This document shows positions 25,081 through 62,715 of a stretch of 64,000 nt of DNA, piece after piece (position 1 is the stretch's first letter; each line of letters begins with the position of its first letter). The translations under genes were made by a program, and so were the position numbers. Under the pieces are notes generated by a model. It had not been told where the DNA came from, made no database searches, and saw nothing but the letters and a program-made list of their open reading frames with translations. Origin of the DNA: Macrostomum lignano. Taxonomy: Eukaryota. The DNA lies in assembly GCA_002269645.1 (NCBI GenBank), contig NIVC01001177.1:124001-188000 (forward strand), in the 5' to 3' direction.

Positions 25081-28000
25081 ATGAATGACACATGCGAAAG
25101 AATTAACACATATGGCCAAAGTAAGTCTTCATTTATTATTGGCTATGAAGGCATCCCGCAGAACCTATTGCTAAATGCTGTTACCAGTGTGGTAAGTTAT
25201 AAATTGCTTTGTCTAAAGCAGCAACAACTCTTGTTTATTAATTATGACAAAGTATAAAATTACAACTTTCTGCATCTCGTTTTTAGATTTTGATCATCAT
25301 TTTCCTGATCATTCGGAAGGTGGCATGGCGGTACAGTCAGTCTGCTCTGTTGGATACATCAGAAGAATCGTGAGTCATAATGATAAGATTTGTATTTTAT
25401 GCTCTTTAGAATATTTTTAGTACTGCTATAATCTTTTCTCTAGAATTGTCCTCAGTTTTTTAAGTTAATCTTTTGACATTCATTTTGCTTCCCAGCTACA
25501 CTGATTTCAGATCCCCAGTTGCTGGGCAACCTCCCAGAGTGTCAGTTTCTGGGTCAGCCTCCCAGATCCCCAGTTGCTGGGCCAGCCTCCCAGATCCCCA
25601 GTTGCTGGGTCAGCCTCCCAGATCCCCAGTTGCTGGGCCAGCCTCCCAGATCCTCAGTTGATGAGCCAGCCTCCCAGATCCCCAGTTGCTGGCCCAGCCT
25701 CCTAGAGTGTCAGTTGCTGGGCCAGCCTCCCAGAGTGTCAGTTGCGGGGCCAACCTCGCAGAGTGTCAGTTGCTGGGCCAACCTCCCAGATCCCCAGTTG
25801 CTGGGCCAGCCTCCCAGATCCCCAGTTGCTGGGCCAGCCTCCCAGATCCTCAGTTGATGAGCCAGCCTCCCAGATCCCCAGTTGCTGGGCCAGCCTCCCA
25901 GACCCCCAGTTGCTGGGCCAGCCTCCCAGACCCCCAGTTGCTGGGCCAGCCTCCCAGACCCCCAGTTGCTGGGCCAGCCTCCCAGACCCCCAGTTGCTGG
26001 GTCAGCTCGCAGGCCGTGCCTACTAGTAAAACCTATCTGTATAGTATCGGATCTGGTTTTTATTGAGCACACCGATTAAACTAAATGCCATTAACTGCCA
26101 CCGTCAGGGAAGGAAGTTTCAAAAGGTGAGCTAGTATGCTGTACTAAGTCTATATGTCAGTTTTATAAAAGTCAATATTTCATATTGTATTTTATTAATA
26201 AAATTCCGCTTTAAAGTTTCGTTTTGTTATTGTTTTGTTTAATTAGTCTAAAAATACAGAATTTAATATTGAATTTAGTGTAAAGCAACATTGCATGGCA
26301 TTCTTGTCCATCTTGCTATGTTCCGATTAACATCATACTTTTTAGCTCCTGATGTTGTACATGTTTAGTTGAGAAATAAAATGATTCCTAAAATAAGGAC
26401 CCGGGCCTACTAACGATATGTAGGGTAAATAATATAAATCGTAGCAAATTGAAGTTGCATAAATCATATTGCATGATAGCAAATAATAAAATTAATTTAT
26501 CCTACGTGTTACTTTCGTTGTTTGTTTGTTTGTTTGTTCATTTTTGTTTCCATTCGCATATTGATTTGTCTGCTACCCGAAACCTGAACAAAAATTTCAG
26601 CTATTTAATTAAGAAACAGCGCAACTATAATGTGTACGTTTGCAATTTGGTGTTGGCGGTATTATTATTTATTGTCTTTGAGTGTGCGCTTGCTTAACCC
26701 CGGCCAGTTGGGCGTAATTGATGAATTTAATTGTCGCCTTTATAAACCAGAATAATTGCGTCATAAAATGTGACGCCTTATCTATAGTTTAATAATAAAA
26801 GCTTTAAACTGCAATTTTTATCATCAACTTGCACTAATTACCTAAAAAAATTAAACTAGTTTAATCTGTTTAATGGCAAAGTGGTGAGAGAAATTCGCAC
26901 TAATTCTATAATTAATCCATAACTGGTGTACGTATGAGGCGTTCCTTTGTTATCACGGGAGATAAATTCGTTGGCAATTCTGTGGTCTACAATTTGTAAA
27001 GTCATTTTTCGAAGTTGCTATAATTAACACTAGACATTAAAGTATAATTCATTGTCATGTTTGCAGAAGGGGTGTGTTAATTTAGGAAAATAATTGTAGC
27101 GAAATAGATGTTATAACAGATTGTATTAAATTAGATAGTTATCAAAACCGGATAAGACAGTCATCAGGGACCAGATTAGACAGTCATTTGAGATCAAATT
27201 AGACAGGTATTAAGATCAGATTAGACAGTCATTAAAAATCTGATTAGACAGTTATTAGAGATCAGATTAGACAGTCATTTGAGATCAGATTAGACAGGTA
27301 TTAGAGATCAGATTAGACAGTCATTGAATATCAGATTGGACAGTCATTAGAGATCAGATTAGACAGTCATTTGAGATCAGATTAGACAGGTATTAGAGAT
27401 CAGGTTAGACAGTCATTTGAGATCAAATTAGACAGGTATTAAGATCAGATTAGACAGTAATTAAAAATCTGATTAGACAGTTATTAGAGATCAGATTAGA
27501 CAGTCATTTGAGATCAGATTAGACAGGTATTAGAGATCAGATTAGACAGTCATTTGAGATCAGATTAGACAGGTATTAGAGATCAGATTAGACAGTCATT
27601 TGAGATCAAATTAGACAGGTATTAAGATCAGATTAGACAGTCATTTGAGATCAAATTAGACAGGTATTAAGATCAGATTAGACAGTCATTGAAAATCAGA
27701 TTGGACAGTCATTAGAGATCAGATTAGACAGTCATTTGAGATGAGATTAGACAGTTATTAAGATCATATTAGACAGTCATTTGAGATGAGATTAGACAGG
27801 TATTAAGATCAGATTAGACAGTCATTAAAAATCAGATTAGACAGTTATTAGAGATCAGATTAAACAGTCATTAAAAATCAGATTAGACAGTTATTAGAGA
27901 TCAGATTAAACAGTCATTTGAGATGAGATTAGACAGGTATTAGAGATCAGATTAGACAGTCATTAAAAATCAGATTAGACAGTTATTAGAGATCAGATTA

Positions 28001-31000
28001 AACAGTCATTAAAAATCAGATTAGACAGTTATTAAAGATCAGATTAGACAGATATTAAAAATAAGATTAGATAGGTATTCAGATCAGATTAGACAGTCAT
28101 TTGAGACCAAATTATGCAGCTATTAAGATCAGATTAGACGTTATTAGATGTCAGATTAGACAGAAAAGAGATGACAATTAACAAAGTCAGCTAATTCTAT
28201 TCTCGTCCTTCTAAGAAAGAGCAAACAGTGGCAGTCATAGAATCGCGCGGCCACCTCTTGAGCATTCTAGAATTCTAAAAGATATCATATTAATTTTTTA
28301 ATCATCCCTTCTAGCTGGTCGCAGTTCTTCTACGGCAACCTGAAGCGGCACCATCGAGCTAGCGCGGTGGCCTCAACGCCTTCGGACGATAATCGCCCTG
28401 GCGCGCAGGGCAACGAGTCGTCTGACGCCTCCTATTCGCCCAATTTATTGCCGGAATCAATGTCGGGGGCGCCTGAGTCTGCTGGCGGCGGCGGCGGCGG
28501 TCGGGTCGGTGGCGGAGCCAGCAACCTGCAGCAGGATCCTGTGAGTGGCGATTTTTTGGAGTGGGAATTTTAAGGTAATAAATGGGACTTCAAATCAGTT
28601 TAGGGGATTATTGGGGATTTCAAATCAGTTTGGGTGATTATTGAGGATTTCAAATCAGTTTAGAAGATTAATGGAGATTCTGAATCAGATTAGCGGATTA
28701 ATGGGGATTTTAAATCATATTAGGGGATTAATGGGGATTTCAAATTTAGTTTAGAGGATTAATGGGAATTCTGAATCAGATTAGTGGATTAATGGGGATT
28801 TTAAATCATATTAGGGGATTATTGGGGACATACATGCGCAACCTCCGAAATTCGGTCGGCCATGCGACTTAGTTTTAACAAAAATGCGACGTAGTTTTTG
28901 GCCAAAAATGCGACTTGCATGAAAAAAAACCCTAAAGCAAAATTAACGCAACTTTGGGTAAACGGCAGGAGTAACAAAACTGTCTTATTACATTGAAAAT
29001 TACATTTAAAATGCCTCGTCAGCTACTTAGTACTACTACTTAGTTATTTTTTCGGGTGGGCATTTTTGCGACCTCCTTGGTTGGCCGCCAAATCGGTCGG
29101 CCGGATCGGCCGACTCGGCCGACTGTTGCACATGTATGATTGGGGATTTCAAATTTAGTTTAGGGGATTAATGGGGATTTCAAATCATATTAGGGGATTC
29201 TTGGGGATTTCAAATCAGTTTAGGGAATTAATGGGAATTCTGAACCAGTTTAGGCGATTAATTGGGATTCTAAATCAGATTTGGGGCTTTCAAATAATTT
29301 AAAGGGATTTGTGGGGATTTCAGAAACATTTCATAGAATTTTAAGGAGATTCCGAATCCGTTTAAGGGGTTTTTAGGGATTTCGAGTCAGTTTCCATTCT
29401 GACGATGATTTTATAATTTGAATTTCTACTCCCCAATTCCTCCCCCATTTCTGTTCTAAGGGCCTGTTCCGCAGCCTGAAGTCATTTATACAGCTAACAG
29501 ACGAAGACATTGGTTCAGTTGCTGGCAAAGATGCTGTGCGCTACATCAAACTGCAGCGTTACATATTCGTATTGTTGCTAGTTGTGCTAGTACTGTCCCT
29601 GTCTATCGTATTGCCGCTCAATATTCACGGAGCTTTCACTGACAAAGTGGGCGATTTCTCTCGAACTACTATTAGTAATATTAAAGGCGAATCGTTTTCG
29701 CTATGGGTTCATGGCGTGTTATCGGCTGGTTATATGCTATTGGCTGCTCTGTTCATGTGTCACTACAGTCGGCACGTGGTGTCCTACGATGCTTATAGCG
29801 TGAATCCCAACTGCCTGATGGTCAAGGGCGTGCCAGAGCGGCTGCTAGATGAAGCTGTTATTATGGGCCACTTTCGGTGAGTGCTGCTGTCTGGGTGGGG
29901 TGGGGCGGGGCTAGGTTGTTAGTCACTCTGTGTGTTCTGGGTCTGTCATGTTATTCTGTCAATGTGCTGTCTAGGTGTGCTATGTCTGCGAAGTCATCGT
30001 GTGTTCTATGTCTGTAAAGTCGTGTTCTATGTCTGTAAAGGCATGTGTTCTGTGTCTGTAAAGCCATGTGTTTTATGTCTATAAAGTTGTGTTTTATGTC
30101 TGTAAAGCCATGTGTTTTATGTCTGTAAAGTCATGTGTTCTATGTCTGTAAAGGCATGTGTTCTGTGTCTGTAAAGCCATGTGTTTTATGTCTGTAAAGT
30201 CATGTGTTTTATGTCTGTAAAGTCATGTGTTCTATGTCTGTAAAGGCATGTGTTCTATGTCTGTAAAGTCGTGTTCTATGTCTGTAAAGTCGTGTTCTAT
30301 GTCTGTAAAGTCGTGTTCTATGTCTGTAAAGTCATGTGTTCTGTGTCTGTAAAGTCGTGTTCTATGTCTGTAAAGGCATGTGTTTTATGTCTATAAAGTC
30401 ATGTGTTTTATGTCTATAAAGTCATGTGTTTTATGTCTGTAAAGTCATGTGTTCTATGTTTGTAAAGGCATGTGTTCTGTGTCTGTAAAGCCATGTGTTT
30501 TATGTCTATAAAGTCATGTGTTTTATGTCTGTAAAGCCATGTGTTTTATGTCTGTAAAGTCATGTGTTCTATGTCTGTAAAGGCATGTGTTCTATGTCTG
30601 TAAAGGCATGTGTTCTATGTCTGTAAAGGCATGTGTTCTGTCTTATTTCACGTGCTCTATGTCTTTAAAGTCAAGGGCTCTATGTCTTATTTCATGTGCT
30701 CTGTGTGTGAAGTCATTTGTTTTATGTCTGATTTCATGTATTCTATGTCGATTTTCATTCTATGCAACCTCTGACTTTCTGACCACAAAATGCGCATTAT
30801 AAAGCCATTATCTTATACATTCTGTGAGGCTCTCTGTTCTGTCAGTGATGTACCAAACTCAACTGAGAAAGGTAGCACTATTATCTATGTCAGAGGTATC
30901 TATATCATATTGTTTATTGTTTCAATAATTTTTACAGCGAAGCCTATCCTAACGTACTGGTTGAGAAGGTCAACTTTGTTTATGATACAGCTAAACTGCA

Positions 31001-34000
31001 GAAACTGCACGATGAAAGGTAAAAAAAGAGATTAAATTTTAATATTTCTACTAGTAGTAGAAATACGAGAAAATCGTAATAACTTAAGTAAAATATACGG
31101 AAAAATGTTAGAATCACGCATTTTATAAAAAATAAACAATTTTTTGCCTAATCCAGCATATTCATATCTGCCGTGCTGCAACTCTGCCGAGAAGAAGCCG
31201 AAGCTGCAGCGGACGCAGCGGCAGCCACCGGTGCAGCCTCCTCATCCACCACTCCGATAGCTGAACCGCCGCAGGTGTCCGTAACTAAGTGCCGTTGCAC
31301 TTGGCTGTGCGGCGGCTGCTGCTGCGGCACCGAGGATGCCGTCACTTACTACGCTGATAGATTGGAGAATATCAGCAAGAGACTGACGCATGAGGCTGAG
31401 GTGAGTGCTAGCGGTAGTAGTAGTAGTATCTTTAGTAATAGTAGTATATGTAGTAGTAGCAGTACTAATAGTAGTAGTAGCAGTAGTAGTAGTAAGTAGC
31501 AGTAGTAGTATCTGTAGTTATAGTAGTATTAGTAGTAGTAGCAGTAGTAATAGTAGTAGTAGTAGTAGTAGTAGCGGTGGTAGTAGTAGTTGTAGTAGTA
31601 GTAGCAGTAGTAATAGTAGTAGCAGTAGTAGTAGCAAGTTGGATCTAAATCTGTTTTATCTGTATTAGTATAGGTATTGATAGTAGTAGTAATCGTAGTA
31701 CATAAAGCTATTAATACTAATTATTACTAACTAAACCGACTTGCCAACCGCAGGTCTCCAAGAGCCGCAAACTGCCATTCATATTCGTTGAATTTGCCAC
31801 GCCAACCGATGCCAGTCACGTGCTGTCGGATTACCAACGTGCCCAGGGCCACCTGTGCGGCCTGCTGCCATTCAATAGGCGTGGCCCGGCACGCAGCGTC
31901 CACTCCGAGGTGTTGCAGACCGACTCGTGGACGGTGGGTTTGATCGATTGTTGCCCTGGCCTAGCTACTAGCTAGGATGGACCTACCTGTCCATCACTGA
32001 TAACCTACCCATCTATCAAAGATAACCTACCCATCTATCAATGATAACCTACCCATCTATCAATGATAACCTACCCATCTATCAATGATAACCTACCCAT
32101 CTATCAATGATAACCTACCTGTCCATCAGTGATATCCTACCCATCTATCAACGATAACCTACCTGTCCATCAACGATAACCTACCTGTCCATCAGTGATA
32201 ACCGACCTGTCTATCAGCGACAACCTACCCATCTATCAACGATAACCTACCTGTCCATCAATGATAACCTACCTGCTCATCAATGATAACCTACCTGTCC
32301 ATCAATGATAACCTACCTGTCCATCAATGATAACCTATCCGTCTATCAATGATAACCTACCTGTCCATTATTGGTAACCTACCTGTCCATCAATAATCAC
32401 TGTCTGTCAATTTTTACAATCCAAATGTTTAACAAGCTAAAGGAACCTGGTTCGATTCCGTGCTCACGTGACCACATTAATTTGCTTTTCCATGGGGAGG
32501 ACCAATCCCCAACTCCAAAGGCGGAACTGCCTAACTAACAACCCTTTTTGGCACCCCAATTTTAAGGTTGAATACGCGCCCTACCCTGAAGATCTGAACT
32601 GGCACAATCTGAGCCATGCGGCCAGCCTGGTGTGGTATCTGCGAGCCGCCATGATCAATACTGGCCTAGTGCTGTTGCTGTTCTTCTTCACTACGCCGGT
32701 TTATTTCATGACTATGCTCAAGCTGAATCGGATTAATGATGCCGTGAGTTAAAATGGGAAAATATCAATTGTAATTAGATTAGTGCGCAATAGCCAGTAC
32801 TTGCGCGCTTGTGCAAAATGTCTGTCTGTCTGTCTGTACTTGCGCGCTTGTGTAATTGTCTGTCTGTCTGTATTTACGCGCTTGTGTAAATGTCTATCTG
32901 TGTACTTGCGCGCTTGTGTAATTGTCTGTCTGTCTGTATTTACGCGCTTGTGTAAATGTCTATCTGTGTACTTGCGCGCTTGTGTAATTGTCTGTCTGTG
33001 TACTTGCGCGCTTGTGTAATTGTCTGTCTGTCTGTATTTACGCGCTTGTGTAAATGTCTATCTGTGTACTTACGCGCTTGTGCAAAATGTCTGTCTGTGT
33101 AGTGTACTTGCGCGCTTGTGTAATTGTCTGTCTGTGTACTTGCGCGCTTGTGTAATTGTCTGTCTGTCTGTACTTACGCGCTTGTGCAAAATGTCTGTCT
33201 GTGTAGTGTACTTGCGCGCTTGTGTAATTGTCTGTCTGTGTACTTGCGCGCTTGTGTAATTGTCTGTCTGTCTGTACTTACGCGCTTGTGTAAAATGTCT
33301 GTCTGTGTAGTGTACTTGCGCGCTTGTGTAAATGTCTGGCTGTGTACTTGCCCGCTTTTTGCAAATATCTGCTTGTTTAGTAACAGACAAATTTACAAAA
33401 TATTCTAGTATAATTGTTATTATTCATATTTGAAAACACAATTTCAGTTCCAACGCAACGTAGCCACCCAGTTTCTGCCAACCCTGTTTCTGTGGTTCTT
33501 CTCAGCCATACTGCCGCTAATAGTCTACTATTCAGACCTATTTATTCAGCACTGGACAAAGTCCACTGAGCACTATGCTATTATGATCAAGTGCACTCTG
33601 TTCCAACTGCTCATGGTGCTCATTCTGCCCAGTTTCGGCCTGTCCCGAGCGGACGAATTCTTTAAATGGATATTCAGTTTGAATTCGAACGATTCTGCGT
33701 TCCGATTGCGCTGGCACTGCGTGTTTGTCTCCGAGAATGCGTCATTCTTTGTTAATTACGTCATCACTACGGCAATGATAGGGTGTTGCGCAGATCTGTT
33801 ACGCTTCTCCGAGCTTATTAACTACGCTTTTCATTGGTTCAGCGCTAGATCGAGTGCTGAAGCGAAGCTGGCTTATAAGAAAGTTCAATGGGAGAATCAG
33901 TACGGCTTCAACCTGTCCTGGATGCTTTGCATATTTGGCATTGTAATGACTTACGCTAATGTGGCCCCGCTAATACTCGTGTTCGGTGAGTCACGGAAAG

Positions 34001-35739
34001 ATAGCGGCAACATAGAGGGTAGAAAGCGGATTAACAGTGGGTAGGGAGTGGATTAACAGGGGGTAGGGAGCGAATTAACAGGCGGTATGGAGCGGATTAA
34101 CAGAGGGTAGGAAGCGGATTAGCTTTGGATAGGGAGCGGATTAACAGGGGGTAGGGAGCGGATTAGCTTTGGATACGTAACGGATTAACAGGGGGTAGGG
34201 AGCGGATTATCAGTGGGTAGGGAGTGGATTAACAGGGGGTAGGGAGCGGATTAGCTTTGGATAGGGAGCGGATTAACAGGGGGGGTAGGGAGCGGATTAT
34301 CAGTGGGTAGGGAGTGGATTAACAGGGGGTAGGGAGCGGATAGAACTGGGGAGGGAGCGGATAGAACTGGGGAGAGAGCGGATAGAACTGGGGAGAGAGC
34401 GGATAGAACTGGGGAGAGAGCGGATAGAGCTGGGGAGGGAGAGGATGGACCTTAAGGAGAACAGATGAATAAAGTATTTATTAAACCGCTGTAATCTGAG
34501 AGCAGGGAGATGAATATGGTTAGTATTTGAATAAGAATATCTGTCGCAATGAAATAAACGGAATCTATCTCCATGTCAATCCCAGGTATCCTGTACATGA
34601 TCATGAAAATGATAGTAGACCGCTACAATATTCACTACGTCTATCTGCCATCGATAATGGACCGCGACGTGCACAGGCTGTCCCAGTCTCTTGTACTGGT
34701 CTGCGTATTCCTTGGCGAAATATTTATTGTGGGTTTCTTTCTAATTCGAATTCCTGGGATGTCCGACGCTCGCACAGTGTTCATGTTTGTGGCGGTTATT
34801 ATCAGTTTGGCTTACATTTTCGGCAGGCTGATGGTGCACATGCTTAGGAAGGCTGGCTGTTTTGGAGAACAGGTGAGTGGGGGGCTTTCCATTGATGTTT
34901 TTTTCGTGGCATCGTTACTCTAGGATTGAGATGAGTGGTTGCTATGGTAACCAGAACCTAGGTTTGTGGTTGCTATGGTAACTAGAATCTAGCGGTATGT
35001 GTTTGCTATGTTAAATGGAATCTAGAGGTTCCTGTGGTTGCTATGGGTACTAGAGTATAGAGGTTTGTGGTTGCTATGGTGACTAGAATATAGAGGTTTA
35101 CTGTTGCTATGGTAACTAGAATATAGAGGATTATTGTTGCTATGCTATGGTGACTATAATATAGAGGTTTATTGTTGCTATGGTAACTAGAATATAGAGG
35201 TTTATTGTTGCTATGGTGACTAGAATATGGAGGATTATTGTTGCTATGCTATGGTGACTATAATACAGAGGTTTATTGTTGCTATGGTAACTAGAATATA
35301 GAGGTTTATTGTTGATATGGTGACTAGAATATAGATGTTTATTGTTGCTATGGTAACTAGAATATAGAGCTTTATTGTTGCTATGGGAACTAGAGTGTAG
35401 GAATGTTTGGTAACTATGGCAAATAGAATCTAGATACGCGTGGTTGCTATAGTAACTAGAACCTAGAGATGCGTGGTTGATATGGCAATTAGAATTGAAA
35501 GATGTCTAGTTGCTTTGGTAACTAGGATCTAGAAATGTTTGGTTGCTATGGAAACTACAAGATAAAGATACGCGGTTACTAATGCCATCAAACAGCCTAT
35601 CAATCCCACTTCCCCAAATTTCAACCAGAGCTTCGATCTGGGCTGCTTAGAGAACTGCGACAAAACGCCTTACCTACCGAAAGTGCTGCTGAGACCGCCT
35701 GGTGGCAGCAGGAGTTCGGGACTTCCCGCCGAGCATTAG
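25081..35739 (+). CDS. TMEM63: TMEM63/OSCA (CSC1-like) mechanosensitive channel, join(25081..25191,25287..25369,28315..28540,29461..29876,30938..31018,31157..31400,31754..31933,32567..32743,33448..33985,34586..34872,35629..35739), 817 aa
   Basis: All ten introns are GT-AG and phase-compatible, totalling 2454 nt. Motifs GIPQNLLLN, RKVAWRY, GKDAVRY..LQRY, EAYP, AP.PEDLNWHNL, QFLPTL, VDRYNI..Y. Confidence 0.95.
25508..26005 (+). repeat. 28-bp minisatellite (cctcccagatccccagttgctgggccag)n, locus 1
   Basis: About 18 units in TMEM63 intron 2. Confidence 0.95.
27160..28150. repeat. 23-bp minisatellite (gagatcagattagacagtcattt)n
   Basis: About 43 units in TMEM63 intron 2. Confidence 0.95.
28575..29400. 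repeat. About 30-bp degenerate repeat (gggatttcaaatcagtttaggggattaatg), interrupted by a MITE
   Basis: Tandem units in TMEM63 intron 3. Confidence 0.85.
28829..29138. mobile_element. hAT-type MITE, 310 bp, young copy
   Basis: 14-bp TIR CATACATGCGCAAC / GTTGCACATGTATG (13/14), perfect 8-bp TSD ATTGGGGA (28821-28828 and 29139-29146), subterminal CGGCC repeats. Confidence 0.9.
29990..30625. repeat. 23-bp minisatellite (tgtctgtaaagtcatgtgttcta)n
   Basis: About 28 units in TMEM63 intron 4. Confidence 0.95.
31410..31636. repeat. (AGT/AGC)n microsatellite
   Basis: Fills most of TMEM63 intron 6. Confidence 0.95.
31985..32390. repeat. 22-bp minisatellite (tgataacctacctgtccatcaa)n
   Basis: About 18 units in TMEM63 intron 7. 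Confidence 0.95.
32795..33350. repeat. About 32-bp minisatellite (tacttgcgcgcttgtgtaattgtctgtctgtg)n
   Basis: About 16 units in TMEM63 intron 8; CpGs are intact. Confidence 0.95.
34025..34440. repeat. G-rich 21-22-bp minisatellite (gggtagggagcggattaacagg)n
   Basis: About 19 units in TMEM63 intron 9. Confidence 0.9.
34935..35580. repeat. About 33-bp tandem repeat whose core is an RFX X-box (GTTGCTATGGTAAC)
   Basis: About 19 units in TMEM63 intron 10; six carry the exact 14-mer. Confidence 0.9.
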
Positions 35740-36255: not shown

Positions 36256-37275
36256 ACAGGACCCTTCCAACAGGTGATATAACCCTTCCAACAGGTGATA
36301 TGACCCTTTTAACAGGTGATATGACCCTTCCAACAGGTGACAGGACCCTTCCAACAGGTGATATGACCCTTTCAACAGGTGATATGACCCTTTCAACAGG
36401 TGATATGACCCTTCCAACAGGTGATATGACCCTTCCAACAGGTGATATGACCCTTCCAACAGGTGATATGACCCTTCCAACAGGTGATATGACCCTTTTA
36501 ACAGGCGATATGACCCTTTTAACAGGTGATATGACCCTTCCAACAGGTGACAGGACCCTTTCAACAGGTGATATGACCCTTTCAACAGGTGATATGACCC
36601 TTTCAACAGGTGATATGACCCTTCTAACAGGTGATATGACCCTTCCAACAGGTGATATGACCCTTTCAACAGGTGATATGACCCTTTCAACAGTTGATAT
36701 GACCCTTCCAACAGGTGATATGACCCTTTCAACAGGTGATATGACCCTTCCAACAGGTGATATGACCCTTTCAACAGGTGATATGACCCTTTCAACAGGT
36801 GATATGACCCTTCTAACAGGTGATATGACCCTTCCAACAGGTGATATGACCCTTCCAACAGGTGATATGACCCTTTCAACAGGTGATATGACCTTTCCAA
36901 CAGGTGATATGACCTTTCCAACAGGTGATATGACCTTTCCAACAGTTGATATGACCCTTTCAACAGGTGATATGACCCTTCTAACAGGCGATATGACCCT
37001 TCCAACAGGTGATATGACCCTTTCAACAGGTGATATGACCTTTCCAACAGGTGATATGACCTTTCCAACAGGTGATATGACCTTTCCAACAGGTGATATG
37101 ACCTTTCCAACAGGTGATATGACCTTTCCAACAGGTGATATGACCCTTTCAACAGGTGATATGACCCTTTCAACAGGTGATATGACCCTTCCAACAGGTG
37201 ATATGACCTTTCCAACAGGTGATATGACCCTTCCAACAGGTGATATGACCCTTCCAACAGGCGATATCCCATATT
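36256..37275. repeat. 21-bp minisatellite (aacaggtgatatgacccttcc)n
   Basis: About 48 units. Confidence 0.95.
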
Positions 37276-37974: not shown

Positions 37975-39657
37975 GACTGACGTCCCAGTCTGTAATTGGA
38001 GGCTGACACCCCAGTCTGTAATTGGAGGCTGACTCCCTAGTTTTTAATTGGAGGCTGACACCCCAGTCTGTAATTGTAGGCTGACACCCCAGTCTGTAAT
38101 TAGAGGCCGACACCCCAGTCTGTATGTGATTGGAGGCTGAATCTCCAGTCTGTAATTGGAGGCTGACTGCCCAGTCTGTAATTGGAGGCTGACACCCCAG
38201 TCTGTAATTAGAGGCTGACACCCCAGTCTGTAATTGGAGGCTGAATCTCCAGTCTGTAATTGGAGGCTGACTGCCCAGTCTGTAATTGGAGGCTGACACC
38301 CCAGTCTGTAATTAGAGGCTGACACCCCAGTCTGTAATTGTAGGCTGACACCCCAGTCTGTAATTAGAGGCTGACACCCCAGTCTGTAATTGATGGCTGA
38401 CACCCCAGTCTGTAATTGATGGCTGACATCCCAGTCTGTAATTGGAGGCTGACACCCCAGTCTGTAATTGATGGCTGACACCCCAGTCTGTAATTGGAGG
38501 CTGACACCCCAGTCTGTAATTGGAGGCTGACACCCCAGTCTGTAATTGATGGCTGACACCCCAGTCTGTAATTAGAGGCTGACACCCCAGTCTGTAATTG
38601 GAGGCTGACACCCCAGTCTGTAATTAGAGGCTGACACCCCAGTCTGTAATTGATGGCTGACACCCCAGTCTGTAATTGGAGGCTGACACCCCAGTCTGTA
38701 ATTGATGGCTGACACCCCAGTCTGTAATTGATGGCTGACACCCCAGTCTGTAATTGGAGGCTGACACCCCAGTCTGTAATTGATGGCTGACACTCCAGTC
38801 TGTAATTGATGGCTGACACCCCAGTCTGTAATTGGAGGCTGACACCCCAGTCTGTAATTGATGGCTGACACCCCAGTCTGTAATTGATGGCTGACACCCC
38901 AGTCTGTAATTGGAGGCTGACACCCCAGTCTGTAATTGATGGCTGACACCCCAGTCTGTAATTGATGGCTGACACCCCAGTCTGTAATTGGAGGCTGACA
39001 CCCCAGTCTGTAATTGATGGCTGACACTCCAGTCTGTAATTGATGGCTGACACCCCAGTCTGTAATTGGAGGCTGACACCCCAGTCTGTAATTGATGGCT
39101 GACACCCCAGTCTGTAATTGATGGCTGACACCCCAGTCTGTAATTGGAGGCTGACACCCCAGTCTGTAATTGATGGCTGACACCCCAGTCTGTAATTGAT
39201 GGCTGACACCCCAGTCTGTAATTGGAGGCTGACACCCCAGTCTGTAATTAGAGGCTGACACCCCAGTCTGTAATTGATGGCTGACACCCCAGTCTGTAAT
39301 TGGAGGCTGACACCCCAGTCTGTAATTAGAGGCTGACACCCCAGTCTGTAATTGGAGGCTGAATCTCCAGTCTGTAATTGGAGGCTGACTGCCCAGTCTG
39401 TAATTGGAGGCTGACACCCCAGTCTGTAATTAGAGGCTGACACTGACACCCCAGTCTGTAATTGTAGGCTGACACCCCAGTCTGTAATTGATGGCTGACA
39501 CCCCAGTCTGTAATTAGAGGCTGACACCCCAGTCTGTAATTAGAGGCTGACACCCCAGTCTGTAATTGATGGCTGACACCCCAGTCTGTAATTGATGGCT
39601 GACACCCCAGTCTGTAATTAGAGGCTGACACCCCAGTCTGTAATTGATGGCTGACAC
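37975..39657. repeat. 26-bp minisatellite (ggctgacaccccagtctgtaattgga)n
   Basis: About 64 units. Confidence 0.95.
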
Positions 39658-44601: not shown

Positions 44602-45515
44602 TTTCCAATGACATTGGTCAATACAGTGCTTTCCTGTTTGAAATCTTTACTGATATTGTTCAACAAAAAACCTCAGGACACTGTCAAGTTAAAAATAAAA
44701 GAGTTTTTAGCTACTAATTACATTACATGTAAAATAAAAAGCAAATCGACTTCTAAAATGTTTAAACTTTTTTCAAAGCATAAAAATCTGCTAAGTTCAT
44801 AGCTTATATATATTGTTAATACTTTTTGTTTTAGTTAAAAAAACATAAACTCTTAACTCGTTTTTGAGCCTTATCATTTTCCGGTGCACTGTGTAGAATT
44901 CTATTTTCTATGACCAGCGAACTGTAGTACTACATTTTCTATCCGTAATGGCGATTTATATATGACAGAGAAAACAGAAAGACATCTAAAACGATGCTAA
45001 CACACTTTAATAATAAAAAGTTGATAAAAAATAGAAAAAGCACTTGCTTCATTGAATGCGATAACTCCTAAAAAACGCAGTTAACCGGCTTTGATAAGCA
45101 GTTTTGCAGAATTTTGTGCTTTTAATCGGCTTTGACTGTAGAAAAAGTCTTTTATTTGCTCGGTCAATGAATACTGTTAGCCGCTTTTTTTCCAAAGTGC
45201 ATGAGAACAATTTTTTGAGAACTACGCTAGTAGTTACGTTTATTACTTAGGTTAGTACTACGTTAGTACTACGTTAGTACTACGTTTGGGTTAATAAGTA
45301 TATATTTTTCGTGTTTTTCTGACTTCTTAATGATAATAGATTCGTACACAAAGAGTCGAGCGCTGTACTATTGAAAGAATTATTTTTGTTGTCATTTATA
45401 AATCTTAAGAAAAACTGTTACACATAAATAAAACATAGGTCTATCAATCATTTTATTTCTAATTCACCTAGTCTAGAACTTTAGGTCTTATCCCTTCAAG
45501 CTTTGTAGTATATAG

Positions 45516-48500
45516 TAGGCTGTCCAGTGAGTTTCTAAAGTTTATGGTATCCTATTTTTTCTTGTCTAGCATGATAGAGGGTCTTGAGTGATTTCCAAAA
45601 TGGCCAAGATTGTTAAGATTGGTCAAGTGATAAAAAAGTTATGGCTATTTAAAGATTCAAAATTTGCGTTTTTTTAGATATAAAAATTACACTATGGGCT
45701 TGTTCCCTTTTTGATATCAGTTTTGAAAAAAGGTACTTTAGTAGAGTGTAAAATAGTCATTTTTTGTCCAAATTTGCTACTTTTGGTCTTATTTCAAAGA
45801 TCTACTTGTTTTGCTTCTTTTGCCATGCTTTTTCTGTCATTACATGGTTGGATATGAAAAATATGCTTACATGTTGTTACAAAAGTTGAAAAAAATGGCA
45901 TATGCCGGAGCATGATTTTTTAATTCTTTTGTCAGTAAGTTAGAAACTATCCTGCCTTTTGTAGTGAGACTTTGCAAATTAAAGGTAAACAGTGGTTTGT
46001 ACTCATAGATAAATTTTGGAGTTTCTATTTAGGGTGGAACATTTTTTAAAAACTTTTTATCTCTATTTTTGTCACTTATTTTAGCTTTTTGGCTCATCCG
46101 GGCAAGTTTTTAGAACTTTTTTGTCTACAAGTTGAAAAATATCTTGGTTTCAGCAGTGAAACTTTACATTTATATGACAAACAGTTGTTTCTACAACTGT
46201 GTGTACCTTCTTTCTTTATATGTAGGTTATAGAAAACATTTTCTACTTTTTTGTTGCCTTTTTATCACTGTTTTTTAGCTTTTTGGCATATCTGCAGCAC
46301 ATTTTCTGTTTGATTTTGTCCATCAGTTCACAAGACACAATTATTTTGCAAAAGTGTATATTTAATTTTAAATTTAAGTTAACCTTAAAAGTAAACAAGT
46401 TAAAGATCATTTACTAGATTTAGGCTCAGTCTTCAGGCATGGTCATAACTCGTGCAAGACTCATAGTCATATCATACATAGTCATTTAGGCTCAGGGGAC
46501 TTCAGTCAACTCTCAAGAAGTTAAGTTGAAACAATTATTCATTATATATAATTATATGTATAATATATGTTAATTATATTATACTTATACTATAACATAT
46601 AGTTATACAGTCTCATAGCTATATATATAGTCCTGGCTGGCCTATGCCAGGCTAGGCCTAGGGTTCATACTATCTTGTACTTGTAACTGAGACAGTGAAA
46701 GTCAAACTGGTTAGTCATTTTAGTCCATTTATAATTACATATTATAATTATTATTTACCTTTCTGACCCCTGCTCTTTTTACTGCATTCCAGCTACTGAA
46801 GTAGTGAAGATACAAAAGCTACAATTGCTTTTCTACAATTGCCAGATTTATTGTCAACTGAACTGTTTTATTTAGTTTAGTGTCCTCGTGTCCTTGACCC
46901 CACTCCCACTTGTCCAAGTCCAATGGATCGCCTGATCCCCATCTCCATTGAGAGAGCCATCAAATTTGTCGATAAAGCCAAGGCCAAGGGCGAGAATGGC
47001 GCCAGTCGAGCGACCCGCCTCCTGCGTGCCATGGGCCTTCCCCCCACAGCTGTCAGCTTGCGTTCGAAGGAGGCATTACAATCACTAATTTGCAGATTGA
47101 CACTGGCTTGGGCGCCAACCGCACCGTCTGCCTGTCGCTGCGTGAGGTGGAGGGCGGCACTGCGGAAGTGTATTTCCGCGAGTTCGACGCCAGCATGGAC
47201 GATCTGGTGTACAACTACTGCGCCCTCACGCTTGGAGATCGCAGCGACGAGGAGCGCCAGGAAATGAAGAGCAACGTGGTGATGACCCTGAAGTTTCTGA
47301 TGACGGACCGGCACGTTGTCAACAAAAGCCTTCACGTTTGTACACCCTTTTGCCGTTTGGCCTCGGACTTAATTGCTTAATTAATAATAATGCCCTACTA
47401 GTACTACTTAGTACTTATTAATATTATAACACCTATTTTTGTAAACTTTTAAGTAATATAACTAGTAATTTAAACCAAGCCGGCAGTAAACGTAAACTGA
47501 AACACAATAATAATAATAAGTAATACGGTTGTTACATTTTTTCGTACAAAAATGAACATTAAAACAGCTTCTGCTCAACGACATGCGCTCCCAGCTAGCC
47601 GATCGGCAGGGAGCGCCGGCGCCTCCTCGCATGGTGGCCCTCTTCTGCGGCATGCACGTCATTGTGAATTTGGCTGGTGTTGCAGACAAGGCGCTGCTCG
47701 ATTTCGAGAAGTGCGCCTCGTTGGGGCCCCTTGGCGCTGCTGCGTGTGCAGGTTTTTACCCGTCAAAGGCAGAGTCTGGCGCCCAGCGGCTGATCCGCAC
47801 TGTTTGCAAGGCCTTTCATCACCTAGGCAGTGAGCAATGCGGTGTCTTTACATCGCTGGAGTCCTACTTGGCGATTCACGATAAGCCGGCCTTCCGAATG
47901 GAGGACTTCAGAGGGAATCGCCTTTATGTGATTTTCCCCAATGGCGGCTTTCTCTACCGGCAGAAGGACGTGCTATCGGCCTTTCTGTCCGCGTCGGAGG
48001 GTAAGAACCGCCTGCTGCTTGCGGTGGAAGCTGACCTCGCCTCCGGAGTGCTGCTGGCTGGCTGTCGTGCCCTTGGGTTACTCGACCTGCTGCTCATCCG
48101 GCCTCTGTGGACGCTGCTGCGCGACTCAGGCGTCACGCTGATCGATATGAATCGGCACTATGAGACTGCCCATCGTTGGCTGCAGAGCGTCGCCTCGGCC
48201 GACAGTGTCGCCCCATCGGTTGAGCTGCAGGGCCCGTTCCCCGAGCTGGCGCACTCCGTACTGCGGGATGCTGACGCGCAGACCTCCTGGGAGGCGCTGA
48301 CGACTGCGGAGGCGTCCCTGGAGGAGAACAGCCTTGTCGGCCAAGCCCTTCAGGTTAGTTAAAAAAGCTAGGACTATGAACAGAAGCAGACAAAAACATC
48401 AATAGTTATGTGTCAGTGATAAATGAAATTGTTTGAAAAAAATTCCACTACTATTTTTCATTCTCTTCTACACCAGGTCATCTGCGCCCACATGTTGGTG

Positions 48501-51383
48501 CTGCTTCAGAGAGAAGTGGCAGACCACCTTGACGGCGGCCGCCTACGTAGCCTCTCCACTGAGGACTCAGCCGCGGCTGCACAGGCACCGAAGGACAACG
48601 TCGCCGGGGAGCGAATGTTTGCGGCACTAGACTACTCAGTCCAGGGCAAGCCGCACATGAGGCTTCTGGCCAGGGAGTCCACCGTCCTGTTCGGCCAGAA
48701 TCGCACCGCCGACTGGCTCCGGGAAAAGTCCGAGGGCGAGAAGGACCTCATCTTGACCCGGGCCCGGGCCCTTGCGCCGCTGATGGAGAGTCGGGCAGCC
48801 AGATTGGCAACCCTGAATCGTGAGCGACGCCAGGAGCTCATGCGGCGCAAGCTCGATGAGAGGCAGCGCAAAAAGCAGCAGCGTGCGGCCAACCTGCGCA
48901 ACACCATCAGTGGCGTCGAGTCATACGGAGGCATGTGGCGCACCGCAGAGGGTATGGCCAGTAATCTGGCATCGCTGCAGCCTGCCGAACAGGAAACTGC
49001 AATAAAGGCGCAACTGCGGCTCCACAAGTGTACCAGTAAGTCTGAGCAAGCTGCGTTACCTTTCTTATTCAAAACAGTGACATAACAATTTACAAATGCC
49101 AAAAAAGCTCGTAACTTTATGTAACTTGTCAAAGAAAAGTCTGATATAAGTGGAAAAAGTGTACATTTACAAAAATATTACTTCATTTATCACAGAGATG
49201 GTCCTGCCGAAGGATAAGAGCCATCTGCTTAACTTCTCGGCTCGTGGCGTGCGCTTTTCTTTGGCCCAGCTGCACCAGAATCTGGAAGAAGTTCTGGAAA
49301 TTCTGGCACAGCAGACGGAGGCAGCACAGCAGTCAGCCACGCCACATTCCGGCTCGACCCTGGCATCCGAAGTTCGCGAGGAACGTGTCAAATCCGCCGT
49401 CCAGGCCATTTTGTCCAAAGCGAGCGGGCCACCTGCTGCCTCCACAGTGAAGAAGGCCAAGCCCCCCAATGCCAGTGTGCAGCGCGGTAGAGGACGTGGC
49501 CGTGGCAAAGGACACCAGCGTGAAGGAGGCCGAGGCCGAGGGCGTGGTCGCGGCGCCCGGCCTTCAGCTACGGTCTCCAGTGATGAGGCCAGCGCGGATG
49601 CCCAGCCAGACAGCACGCAATCAGGCCTGCCGCGTCTCTATGCCGGTCTCCGCATCGAAATGCTCTTCGCGTACGTCGACGAAGACTCCGACGTAGCGGA
49701 CTATGAAGAATGGAACGCTGGCTACATCATCCGGCAGGTGCCAACGCCAGGATTGAGCCGCGACGTCCTCGACCAGCGCTTCCTAGTCGAGTTTGACGAC
49801 TTTCCTGGAAAGCCGGTGCCCTACGACCTGTACCGCGACTACATTCGCGGCGACCTTCGCATCCTGGCCAACGACTGGGACAGTGATGATTAAAAAGCAA
49901 ATGTTAATTAAATTAAACGGGAGTCATTGCCTCATTGAATACTAAGTGTAAAAAATGAATGACAAATGGGCAAATGGCTTAAAGAAAAACAATATACCTT
50001 CTACTTTCTAATTGCATAGTACGTTTATTTTTATTTTATGAATGCTTTTAAAATTAAAGTGTAAGAAGGACCACAAATGTAAATACACCTTAAACGTCGA
50101 CATTGTTTAAGAAGTGAACTTGTAGTATTAAAGAAAAGGTATTTAATTAGTGGTAAAAAATGACCTTGCAAAAAAGTCACTCACTTGCAAGGAATCTCAA
50201 GGACAAATTCAACTTTTTAAAGTTAAAACTTCAGTAACTCTGAATAATATGTAGTTAATAAAATGGTTATTTGTTAAAAATATATAAATAGTACTAGTAG
50301 TAGTAGTAGCTCAGAATTAAAATGCTTCTCAATACAGATTGACTTAACTAAATTGCCTACGTAAAATGTTGGCCAATTTAGCAGTAGGATGGGAGTTAGA
50401 GTCGCTGACCAGGCGACTGCCAGGGATCACTTGTTGGGATAGCTATATACTGATTACTGGGGGTCAGAAATTCAGCAGCTTTCCAATGGAAGCCTCCACA
50501 GTGACCCCCAAGGCTGAAATAAATCATGACTGCATTAAGTTTCACTTCTCCTTTCTATTTTTTGCAATAAAGAACTAAAAAGTAATGAAAAATTCGTTTT
50601 TTTCATATTTTCTATGTAAGTAGTACAAAGTAGTTTGCATGCACATGAATGCAGGAAAAACAAAAAGAAAAGTTTCTCAAAACGGACACACAATGAGTGG
50701 GCTGCACACGTTTCATCTATTTTACATTTCAATAGGGGCGAAGAATGTGCAAATACAACTGCGTCGGTCTGTTTAAAAAAAAATGACAAGCCTTTTTCTA
50801 TTTTAAATGGCAAAATACATGTAGAAGTATAAAAAATATAAAGTTCAATAACTTTTTTCGGACAACACCGATGCACAAGCAGTTCTTTGCGAACGGCTGG
50901 TATGAAGTGCCACTTTCATACATTAAACTGAATTAGTGCGTCGGAGATCGACTAAATACTTTTTTTGGGCAACAAAATTTTTTATCGCTTTATATAGTCC
51001 ATAAAAAAACTTTTTTTCTTTCAAAAATACAGTTACTGGTTTGTCTTAAATGTGAACATTGCATATTAGTAGCGAAACTTTGTTAAAATGTACCCTTTTG
51101 TGGAAAAAAAACTTTTTTTGAAATGTGATTTTCATTTCAAAATGGAGCCAATGCGATTCGTTACCGTAAAATGTATCCACTTTGACTGGTCACCGCATTA
51201 ATTGTAGTGCATTGTTTTGTCTCCATTTTTTTTTTAAATAACAACAGTGTTCTTTACTTTTTAGGGTATACTTTGGTTTTTCTTTATGTGCAATACTTTT
51301 TTTCTGGTACGCCAACAAAAAATATCATTTTTTGCTAAAATTCGTGTTTTTTTCAACTTACGGTAATCTCACTGGACAGTCTA
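45516..51383 (+). mobile_element. hAT-like (probably hATw-type) DNA transposon, 5868 bp
   Basis: 16-bp TIR TAGGCTGTCCAGTGAG / CTCACTGGACAGTCTA (15/16), perfect 7-bp TSD TATATAG (45509-45515 and 51384-51390), and an internal spliced transposase. The subgroup call rests on recalled 7-bp TSD length. Confidence 0.85.
47096..49893 (+). CDS. Transposase, join(47096..47335,47568..48353,48477..49035,49196..49893), at least 760 aa, with an RG-rich segment and a C-terminal Spindlin-like Tudor domain; 5' exon unresolved
   Basis: The four exons splice in frame with no stops. Motifs FLMTDR, FCGMH..NLA (CxxH), FRGNRL.V.F and PKDNVAGERMF (NxxxERxF) are typical of hAT-clan DDE enzymes. Confidence 0.8.
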
Positions 51384-51489
51384 TATATAGAAATAGTTAA
51401 TATAGTAGTATTGTAGTAGGGCCTAGACCTAATATAGGCCTACACGAAGATAGATTAAATATCAGAACATCTGCACGATTTCTTTCAAT

Positions 51490-55013: not shown

Positions 55014-55754
55014 AACTAGTAGATAACTAATTAACTAACTATCTAACTAGCTAATTAAATAAAACAGCTAGGAGGCAATCCAGTTACTAATCCCTTTTAA
55101 GTTGTAATTCTACCTAATAATATATTTAATAAAAATGTTGCTGGACAATTGACTAATCAACCGACTGACACACACGCGCAGGTGACCATCTGGCCAAATG
55201 CTTACCGCCACGGCGCAATCAGCGAGGCCGTACAAGAGGCTTTGACCTCGCTGTCGGCCACAGACTGCGACAGCATAGTCCTGAGCATCGCCGGCAACAG
55301 CTGGTCAAGGCCGCCTAACGCTGGCGGCCTGCTATTGAACGACGTGAAGCCGCTGTGGCTGGAATTGGAAGAGCTGCACTGCGCCGATGTTGTGGCCAGC
55401 TTAGGCGCCGCTGACTTTGTGCCGGATCTGCTTGAGTCGCTGCACCAATGGGCTAAGGAGAAACCGAGGATCTGCCAGCTGCATACTCAGGTGAGGCCCT
55501 GGCTGTTAAATTAGTAGTAGTGGTAGTAGTGGTAGTAGTAGTAGTAGTAGTAGTGGCAGTAGTAGTGGCTGTAGTAGTGGCTGTAGTAGTAGTAATAGTA
55601 GTAGTGGCACTAGTAGTAGTAGTATTTGTAGTAGTAGTAGTGACAGTACTAGTAGTAGTGGCAGTAGTAGTAGCGGTAGTAGTAGTAGTATTGGCAGTAG
55701 TAGTAGTAGTAGTAGTAGTAGTGGCACTAGTAGTAGTAGTAGTAGTAGTGGCAC

Positions 55755-55799
<45 letters not shown>

Positions 55800-55802
55800 C
55801 AC

Positions 55803-55856
<54 letters not shown>

Positions 55857-55859
55857 CAC

Positions 55860-55892
<33 letters not shown>

Positions 55893-56596
55893 CAGTAGTA
55901 GTGGCAGTAGTAGTGGTAGTAGTAGTGGCAGTAGTAGTGGCAGTAGCAGTGGCAGTAGTCGTGGCAGTAGTAGTGGCAGTAGCAGTGGCAGTAGTCGTGG
56001 CAGTAGTAGTGGCAGTAGCAGTGGTAGTAGTAGTGGCAGTAGTAGTGGTAGTAGTAGTGGCAGTAGTAGTGGCAGTAGCAGTGGCAGTAGTCGTGGCAGT
56101 AGTAGTGGCAGTAGCAGTGGCAGTTGTCGTGGCAGTAGCAGTGGCAGTAGCAGTGGCAGTAGTAGTGGCAGTAGTCGTGGCAGTAGCAGTGGCAGTAGTC
56201 GTGGCAGTAGCAGTGGCAGTAGTAGTGGCAGTAGTAGTGGCATTAGTAGGCCTAGTAGATCAAATCGACAGTACACCTGCCGCAACCAGCGGGGAGGCCA
56301 GCCAGTCACATTCTGAATCCCCTAACCTTCAGGTTGCCTGCACAACGCCGTTACGATTGCGTAACTTTGCCAGCGCCAACGGAATGCAACTGCTGACCCA
56401 TAGCGATAGTCCAGATCCGTTGCCTAGCGACCGGTTGCAACAAGCGGTTGCTAAGGCCTTCAATCGCGAGTCGGACGGCCAGGGCTGGCAGCCTCGCTGG
56501 CTGGTCCGTGTGTCCAGCACCGTTCGCGACCGGGGCGTAGTGAAAACCTGGGGCTACGTGTACAAAGTTCAGCGGAATAACATTGTGCCAATGTAA
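51490..56596 (+). CDS. GCLM: Glutamate-cysteine ligase modifier subunit, join(51490..51600,54471..54647,55182..55490,56333..56596), 286 aa
   Basis: TGNILSWSRLRKK, DVKPLWLELE, LHQWAKEKP, QLLTHSD and WLVR.S..VRDRGVVKTWGY match GCLM. All introns are GT-AG and phase 0. Confidence 0.92.
52114..52406. mobile_element. hAT-type MITE, old inverted copy of the 28829 family
   Basis: Colinear reverse-complement alignment with 28829..29138 and the same TIRs. Most CpGs are mutated and no TSD is recognisable. Confidence 0.85.
52601..53591 (-). mobile_element. Non-autonomous mariner relic in GCLM intron 1
   Basis: TA-flanked inverted repeats of about 45 bp (tatgaggggtgtccaaaaa-tagtgatactttt versus tacaagggatgtccaaaaagtagtgatactttt). 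Minus-strand HTH peptide GRTDLADQHRTG..LLDEDSRMTIREITDKL..TIHQSL; DDE domain absent. Confidence 0.8.
54705..55040. repeat. (TGAC)n grading into (TTAC)n microsatellite
   Basis: GCLM intron 2. Confidence 0.95.
55513..56250. repeat. (GTA/GCA/GTG)n microsatellite
   Basis: GCLM intron 3; source of the poly-Val and poly-Leu ORFs. Confidence 0.95.
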
Positions 56597-57249: not shown

Positions 57250-57795
57250 TTCCCAGGTCAGCCTCCCAGATCCTCAGTTGCTGGGCCAGCCTACCGGATC
57301 CTCAGTTCCTGGGCCAGCCTACCGGATCCTCAGTTGCTGGGCCAGCCACCCAGATCCTCAGTTGCTGAGCTAGCCTACCCGATCCTCAGTTGCTGGGCCA
57401 GCCTCCCAGATCCTCAGTTGCTGGGCCAGCCTACCGGATCCTCAGTTGCTGTGCCAGCCTACCCGATCCTCAGTTGCTGGGCCAGCCTACCCGATCCTCA
57501 GTTGCTGGGCCAGCCTCCCAGATCCTCAGTTGCTAAGCCAGCCTCTCAGATCCTCAGTTGCTTAGCCAGCCTCCCCCAGATCCTCAGTTGCTGGGCCAGC
57601 TTCCCAGATCCTCAGTTGCTGGGCCAGCTTCCCAGATCCTCAGTTGCTGGGCCAGCTTCCCAGATCCTCAGTTGCTGGGCCAGCTTCCCAGATCCTCAGT
57701 TGCTGGGCCAGTCTCCCAGATCGTCAGTTGCTGGGCCAGCCTCCCATATCCTCAGTTGCTGGGCCCGCCTCCCATATCCTCAGTTGCTGGGCCAC
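57250..57795 (+). repeat. 28-bp minisatellite, locus 2 (cctcccagatcctcagttgctgggccag)n
   Basis: About 19 units, intergenic. Confidence 0.95.

Positions 57796-59633: not shown

Positions 59634-62715
<3,082 letters not shown>

Follow-up and report, generated by a model that had tools for sequence, protein, structure and literature searches.

Chromatin-guided integration is documented for chromodomain integrases, for retroviruses that use host tethers, and for the domesticated RAG recombinase, in which the PHD finger of RAG2 reads H3K4me3. The element considered here lies in a stretch of 64,000 nucleotides of Macrostomum lignano DNA (contig NIVC01001177.1, positions 124,001 to 188,000; "the window" below means this whole stretch) and may extend that theme to cut-and-paste DNA transposons. 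Its gene, singled out in an original prediction made from the sequence alone, would join a hAT-like transposase to a C-terminal domain resembling one repeat of the Spindlins.

Among the described systems, chromodomain integrases of the chromoviruses (Ty3/Gypsy) and Gypsy-10_Ec32 of Ectocarpus are similar in that a Royal-family reader is C-terminal on a DDE enzyme (PMC12477816). However, these are long terminal repeat retrotransposons, whereas here the element is a DNA transposon and the reader would be of the Spindlin type. The Gypsy with a C-terminal Tudor domain was presented in 2025 as, to its authors' knowledge, the first transposable element reported to carry one (PMC12477816). RAG1/RAG2, derived from a Transib element, may be an analogous coupling of a DDE cut-and-paste machine to a reader of the H3K4me3 type, but its reader has another fold and belongs to a second subunit, and the system has been domesticated. 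The hAT transposons (Hermes, Ac, hobo) are like the present element in moving by cut and paste, in having short terminal inverted repeats (TIRs) that start 5'-TAG(G), and in giving internal-deletion derivatives. Their transposases also share the order D, D, CxxH, E with an insertion of ~300 residues before E, and ER-x-F at the last catalytic residue, and Hermes is the best, though weak, structural match found by Foldseek. Unlike them, the present element makes target-site duplications of 7 bp rather than 8 bp, has no BED finger or hAT dimerisation domain by Pfam, and has ~300 extra C-terminal residues comprising a coiled coil, an RG (Arg-Gly) linker, and the reader barrel. Spindlin-1, -2, -3, and -4 resemble the barrel significantly over the whole of their repeat 2 (PF02513); strands and helix follow one another as they do in the barrel, and both have the cage pattern aromatic...W...aromatic...aromatic and the tail L-x-D-Y-x-x-G-D-L. 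They differ in having three packed repeats and no transposase, whereas here there is a single repeat that stays below the Pfam gathering score and has Val at the fourth cage position.

Full-text literature searches returned nothing relevant on Spindlin or Spin-Ssty together with transposase or transposon; a search on Tudor domains, chromodomains and DNA transposons found no transposase-reader fusion, PMC12477816 being its one relevant match; and no report was found of a Royal-family reader built into a eukaryotic cut-and-paste transposase. The original prediction had stated that no description was known for hAT elements, and the literature searched agrees. A Spindlin-type reader on a cut-and-paste transposase would be a new form of reader-integrase fusion, a theme already known. 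Should the barrel read a histone mark, the element would be a natural self-targeting DNA transposase, the DNA-transposon counterpart of chromodomain integrases. It would then inform how transposons pick safe or permissive sites, and vectors for chromatin-directed gene delivery could be modelled on it; Macrostomum is available as a transgenic model.

The transposon and its gene

Positions 45516-51383 of the window are, with hardly any doubt, a copy of a real, recently mobile cut-and-paste transposon. The copy is bounded by 19-bp TIRs, TAGGCTGTCCAGTGAGTTT at 45516-45534 (+ strand) and, as its reverse complement, TAGACTGTCCAGTGAGATT at 51365-51383 (- strand), and by the 7-bp target-site duplication TATATAG at 45509-45515 and 51384-51390. 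Within the window the TIR motif occurs at these two ends only. Two further copies (loci L001 and L002), each of the full length of 7290 bp (~7.3 kb), encode the NCBI protein BOX15_Mlig018636g1 (P0001) and lie in unrelated contexts, one adjoining a PARG gene and the other within a kinase gene. Each is co-linear with the window from ~45506-45511 (the start of blastn similarity) to 51387-51402 and nowhere else, and all three have identical termini. Over 5.9 kb, ~8 positions vary among the copies (~99.9% identity), and each has its own perfect 7-bp duplication: TATATAG in the window, CCTATAA in L001, and GTATAAT in L002. Since near-identical copies with different duplications sit in unrelated contexts, they point to recent transposition and not to polyploid duplication. 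Perfect 7-bp duplications were also found at the second element of locus L003 and at locus L008, which hold relatives described below. These TIRs, duplications, and copies in unrelated flanks bear out the cut-and-paste element to whose DDE transposase the domain was predicted to be fused. No convincing subterminal repeats were found in the element. Position 6 of the duplication is A in six of the seven perfect cases and in two right-flank 7-mers (L006, L007); the sites are too few and no target motif is called.

The gene is on the + strand, with GC-rich exons embedded in AT-rich DNA. All exons have canonical AG/GT splice sites and matching phases, the spliced model is 100% identical to P0001 across the parts present, and P0001 uses identical positions for the three downstream exon junctions. 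A remnant of exon 1 (46923-47074, P0001 residues 1-52 by tblastn) ends at a deletion junction, 47074/47075. The next exon, 47096-47335, placed by splice sites and frame, holds the second catalytic Asp (LMTDRH; D codon 47306-47308), which corresponds to D469. The exon after it (47568-48353) encodes the CxxH motif, as CGMH at 47646-47657, together with the greater part of the alpha-helical insertion, and the one at 48477-49035 encodes a coiled-coil segment and the putative catalytic Glu (GERMF; E codon 48609-48611). The last exon, 49196-49893, has its acceptor AG at 49194-49195, joins as KCT/K/MVLPKDK, as in P0001, and encodes a conserved segment, a linker, an RG-rich stretch of 28 residues with eight RG dipeptides (49480-49563), the Spin/Ssty-like Tudor barrel (49651-49863, from the strands and helix of a model), and the stop TAA (49891-49893). 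The sequence predicted for this exon was correct to the base, 49480 being a codon start in its frame. Translation of 49480-49893 runs from QRGRGRGRGKGHQREGGRGRGRGRGARP to LYAGLRIEMLFAYVDEDSDVADYEEWNAGYIIRQVPTPGLSRDVLDQRFLVEFDDFPGKPVPYDLYRDYIRGDLRILANDWDSDD and the stop; the order is QRGRGRGRGKGHQREGGRGRGRGRGARP, an acidic/Ser linker, then LYAGLRIEMLF...EEWNAGYIIRQVP...FLVEFDDFPGKPVPYDLYRDYIRGDLRIL...SDD. The domain frame is more than a chance open reading frame (ORF), because the RG stretch and domain recur in the ~40%-identical paralogue at L003 and because the domain is also present in further paralogues of M. lignano, in three proteins from metagenomes, and in a distant relative that has no introns.

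Compared with L001, the window copy is without 1422 bp (L001 10153-11574), so that exon 1 is joined to the tail of intron 2 (GGAGGC/ATTACAATC); the original prediction had overlooked this deletion. The deletion removes P0001 residues 53-397, including the invariant first catalytic Asp, D385, and the frame from the ATG, broken after exon 1, stops after 114 codons. Because the first Asp is lost, the window copy is a non-autonomous deletion derivative that has kept its 3' exons intact.

A second difference concerns a run of six C at 49462-49467, with which the reading frame continues through the RG stretch to the end of the domain. In L001 and L002 the run has five C (locus position ~13962), and in that frame P0001 ends in a frameshifted, spurious tail of 81 residues and has neither RG stretch nor domain. 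The frameshifted reading is also that of a fourth copy, in L008 (by tblastn only, the C run not being read directly). Owing to this frameshift in the annotated protein, public protein sets are without the domain for this element, and, gene models being frameshifted or truncated, the domain is nearly invisible in them. Because the six-C frame alone enters the domain conserved in paralogues, six C is taken as the ancestral state. The five-C loci all come from one older long-read assembly, and other homopolymer differences between the copies go in both directions. The five-C run may be a real mutation that the full-length copies have in common, or it may reflect a systematic error of that assembly at homopolymers.

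The C-terminal domain and its relatives

The region after the RG-rich stretch is a domain of ~80 residues with a single repeat. It is very probably, judging from profile comparisons, a homologue of the Spin/Ssty Tudor-like repeat and specifically of Spindlin repeat 2. The link surfaced only once the profile held seven or eight family sequences. With seven domains, the first 17 matches in the PDB are Spindlin-3, -1, -4, and -2 (expectation value E 4e-4 to 0.06). Addition of the domain of a distant relative, P0016, gives the same 17 chains with E 1.1e-7 to 6.4e-6, the next match being at 0.15, and the alignment covers the whole of repeat 2 and, weakly, repeat 1. The P0016 domain alone finds Spindlin-1 with E 2.3e-5. 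In hhalign the family matches Spindlin-1 repeat 2 with 92.9% probability over 62 columns at 32% identity, while the control, the C-terminus of an amphioxus protein, gives 0.1%. Thus the Spindlin/Ssty-like Tudor domain of the original prediction is upheld, and the Spindlin-1 repeat-2 sequence given there agrees with the PDB chain. A word-indexed protein database gave no match to the window domain, and Pfam PF02513 gave none to the window domain or to six relatives. The P0016 domain has sub-threshold but mutually consistent Pfam matches to Agenet (0.004), PTM/DIR17 Tudor (0.01), and Spin-Ssty (0.034).

AlphaFold2 models the window domain as a confident small beta-barrel (predicted local distance difference test score, pLDDT, 85.5) of order b1-b2-b3-b4-helix-b5, with strands at residues 10-17, 27-39, 52-57, and 65-67, the helix at 69-75, and the last strand at 78-80. 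In the structural check proposed earlier, Foldseek with the model returned only weak PDB matches (E >= 0.06) to SH3-like barrels, namely ribosomal protein bL19, R67 DHFR, and an SH3 domain. These being generic SH3-like barrels, the fold class is consistent, although structure by itself would not pick out Spindlin.

The cage residues of Spindlin-1 (F141, W151, Y170, and Y177) were located in the family by HMMER alignment. Three of the four were predicted to be aromatic in the window, and they are: F141 corresponds to F (EMLF; codon 49666-49668), W151 to W (EEW; 49711-49713), and Y170 to F (VEF; 49792-49794), whereas Y177 corresponds to V (KPVPY; 49816-49818). Over the eight family members, the first and third positions are always aromatic, the second is always W, and the fourth is aromatic in six. 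The invariant Trp is lost in repeat 3 of Spindlin, the non-reading repeat, as read from the PDB sequence. By alignment, then, the cage positions are conserved across the family.

Other subfamilies in M. lignano share 40-57% identity with this one. In the element at L003 (8908-15467), whose TIR is TAGGGTGTCCAGTGAG, the last exon again codes for an RG-rich stretch and then for LEGRRVEVLFGYTDGEVWEQGVVVRHVPGTNADILEHKFKVVFDDHGSTTFEYNLYEDYLKGDLHVLSDDE. Short deletion derivatives represent a third subfamily (TIR TAGGGACTCCAGTGAG), one of 2.0 kb at L003 17477-19484 with the duplication TTAAAAG and one of 3.0 kb at L008 9217-12203 with TCTAAGA. The latter, 157 bp from a copy of the window's family, has kept no exon but the last, which encodes the reader domain (P0011). 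A two-sequence profile of the domain, run exhaustively with HMMER against 1.84 billion representative proteins, found five relatives only, two from M. lignano and three from metagenomes, and no Spindlin. A second profile search, with the transposase core, added no new homologues. In the metagenome protein P0010 one ORF runs from the catalytic-Glu region through the coiled coil and the RG repeats to the domain. In P0016, from an ENA assembly and at 29% core identity, an uninterrupted, intronless ORF of 1028 codons, identical at four loci, carries D388, D461, C507xxH, and E768 and at the C-terminus ...YRRIRHRFECDGSLEWFEGTVLSYCTDTGEFTVQYDHEQGVYSYTLLEDLEAEDLIVQ; its element has the TIR TAGCGATTCCG and the 7-bp duplications CACATAG and CTATTAC. 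Since P0016 carries the same fusion in one ORF, the fusion exists in a single polypeptide and is old and maintained. The suggested survey of homologues thus recovered transposase and domain together in the L003 paralogue, P0010, and P0016. The RG stretch is present in the window, L003, and P0010 and absent in P0016, P0011, and P0013, all of which keep the domain. An argument for selection from identity between the window and L003 was dropped, the linker (34%) and the domain (39%) being similar by global alignment.

Two contigs, L004 and L005, come from ENA assembly ERZ25072283; in L005, 2.5 kb and 6 kb of other DNA lie between the body of the P0016-family element and its 5' and 3' terminal pieces, which suggests nested insertions. 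A Branchiostoma protein (P0007), 26% identical to the transposase, has a long acidic repeat and then, as its C-terminal ~120 residues, another kind of barrel-like segment (HVIVAYEDDWAVGQVTKL...), with sub-threshold chromo-like Pfam hints only (E 0.037). This is the amphioxus control mentioned above; its barrel is not detectably the same domain, and P0007 is not counted as a carrier of the fusion.

Transposase class and possible function

The hAT-like label of the original prediction held in part. The motif layout, the 5'-TAG termini, and weak Hermes matches speak for it; the lack of any Pfam or PDB sequence match and the 7-bp duplications speak against it. In the family alignment D385, D469, and C505xxH508 are invariant and E785 is conserved in an ER-x-F context, which is the layout of hAT, the catalytic assignment being by motif. 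The two Asp are 73-84 residues apart and the second Asp and Glu 307-344, with the helical insertion of ~300 residues. The corresponding spacings in Hermes are 68 and 324. For the core, neither single sequences nor profiles matched any Pfam family or PDB sequence, and no hAT dimerisation domain, BED finger, or DUF659 was found in Pfam for any member or profile. The UniRef name of one protein, P0003 ("DUF659 domain-containing"), was not reproduced with current Pfam. In a Foldseek search with the core model, Hermes chains hold ranks 1-5, 7, 9-11, and 16 of 350,542 PDB chains, and the matches listed include neither a P-element transposase nor RAG. The Hermes matches are weak (E 0.011-0.66, template modelling score ~0.2), on a core model with pLDDT 62.6. 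The terminus TAGGG of the L003 and L008 subfamilies fits the hAT consensus 5'-YARNG; in TAGGC/TAGAC of the window element and TAGCG of the P0016 family only the first four bases fit. Duplications are of 7 bp, not the 8 bp of hAT, in seven insertions from three subfamilies and the distant relative; Repbase lists some hAT families with 7-bp duplications (PMC4455052).

The C/DxxH motif is common to hAT, P, Kolobok, MuDR, and Dada (PMC8869645), and the transposase could belong to one of the other four superfamilies, or to an undescribed one. We regard this as rather unlikely. The missing Pfam matches to hAT, BED, and DUF659, the missing PDB sequence match for the core, the 7-bp length in all perfect cases, and the poor core model leave room for it. 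It is opposed by Hermes leading the Foldseek chains with no P-element transposase or RAG listed, by spacings near those of Hermes, by the TAGGG/TAGGC termini, and by the known hAT families with 7-bp duplications. P was rejected because there is no THAP match in Pfam in addition to the Foldseek result. Dada elements have no TIRs, have N- and C-terminal zinc fingers and a distance of 176 between the second Asp and Glu, and target snRNA (small nuclear RNA) and tRNA genes (PMC3706591). The present family has TIRs, a distance of ~316 residues, and AT-rich, non-genic targets, and Dada is excluded, the zinc fingers being absent by eye only. The classification of the transposase as hAT-like, not proven hAT, is therefore partly supported.

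A full-length element would encode one spliced protein of ~1150 residues, consisting of an N-terminal region, a coiled coil, the DDE core with CxxH and the ~300-residue helical insertion, a second coiled coil, the RG-rich linker, and the Spin/Ssty barrel, in that order. The barrel would bind methylated lysine or arginine on chromatin, H3K4me3 being the obvious candidate ligand because Spindlin repeat 2 is the repeat that reads it. Once bound, the barrel would anchor the transposase, or the transpososome, at marked nucleosomes and so bias the sites of insertion or excision. The original prediction had proposed, besides target-site choice, that reading methylated histone tails may let the transposon evade silencing. 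That the window holds a deleted copy of a hAT-like transposon with a Spindlin-type reader is the best explanation as a whole, and we give it an even chance. The same balance applies to the barrel being a reader of methyl marks. A role for the barrel in target choice is possible but falls short of that. More tentative still is the proposal that an old hAT-like clade steers its transpososome to marked chromatin, e.g., H3K4me3 promoters, through a built-in Spindlin-type reader. The clade is found in a flatworm and in the relative at 29% core identity, whose host is probably another animal. The single-repeat reader may bear on the origin of the three-repeat Spindlin genes, with capture in either direction.

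Several M. lignano insertions are near annotated gene starts. Divergent genes begin 1.7 kb and 4.0 kb from the L001 insertion and 1.35 kb and 0.9 kb from the first L003 element, and the second L003 element is ~1.1 kb inside a DnaJ gene; one copy is deep within a kinase gene. These distances are anecdotal, the sample being far too small for a test.

Several observations weigh against a Spindlin-type reader carried by a hAT-like transposase. The window copy itself is unable to express the fusion protein, and in the full-length copies fetched (L001, L002) the C run shorter by one nucleotide truncates the protein before the domain. The window domain alone, in single-sequence searches, matched nothing in Pfam (including Spin-Ssty) or the PDB; the P0016 domain scores 14.4 bits against the PF02513 gathering cut-off of 25; and Spindlin is absent from the top 50 PDB matches of Foldseek with the domain model. 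Every family member has one repeat, as opposed to the three packed repeats of Spindlins. The fourth cage position is Val in the window subfamily and His in P0011, and the aromatic residues of the cage could be structural rather than functional.

RG/RGG motifs are substrates of protein arginine methyltransferases (PRMTs), many Tudor domains bind methyl-arginine, and repeat 1 of Spindlin-1 reads methyl-arginine. The barrel could be a Tudor-type reader of methylated arginine in RG repeats, either in its own linker, for self-association or auto-inhibition, or in host RG proteins such as components of the PIWI pathway, and serve oligomerisation, regulation, or interference with silencing rather than target choice. 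This known PRMT, Tudor, and Spindlin-1 repeat 1 biology favors the idea, as does the RG-rich stretch that immediately precedes the domain in three lineages (window, L003, P0010), but the stretch is missing in P0016, P0011, and P0013, which retain the domain, and the best match is to repeat 2, the repeat that reads methyl-lysine; we consider it improbable. The C-terminal domain of retroviral integrases and Spindlin repeat 3 are SH3-like modules that bind DNA or another protein, and the barrel may have lost mark reading to become a general module of this kind. The generic barrels returned by Foldseek, the Val or His at the fourth cage position, and the single repeat would suit such a module. Yet the Trp that the non-reading repeat 3 has lost is invariant in all eight members and two further cage positions are always aromatic, and the chance of this alternative is accordingly judged low. 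A domesticated host gene, or a chance resemblance to Spindlin, has next to no probability. In its favor are the introns of the gene and its annotation as a hypothetical protein, but the near-identical copies with TIRs, different duplications, and unrelated flanks, the internal-deletion derivatives, and the E-values of 1e-7 and 2e-5, cleanly set apart from the next match, refute that reading.

Other features of the window

Apart from the transposon, the window has, at 60490-61815 on the - strand, two exons (Pfam HSP70, E 2e-81 and 7e-103) of an Hsp70-family gene, which by eye resembles the endoplasmic reticulum chaperone BiP. Two further exons belong to host genes unrelated to the transposon: an RSN1_7TM exon of an OSCA/TMEM63-type channel at 33430-34044 (+) and an exon of a TPR (tetratricopeptide) repeat protein at 9967-10467 (-). 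A retroelement remnant at 7569-8949 (-) has a reverse transcriptase (RVT_1) followed by a GIY-YIG nuclease, an arrangement typical of Penelope-like elements. Minisatellite arrays are unusually abundant, with units of 12-28 bp in up to 64 copies, and they account for many long spurious ORFs in the window. They lie at 2041-2827, 4350-4802, 5368-6320, 25508-26006, 27151-28163, 29975-30749, 36260-37267, 37977-39657, 55512-56249, and 57259-57794. A 28-bp minisatellite at 60170-60534 abuts the downstream Hsp70 exon, and one 28-bp unit recurs at 25508, 57259, and 60170.

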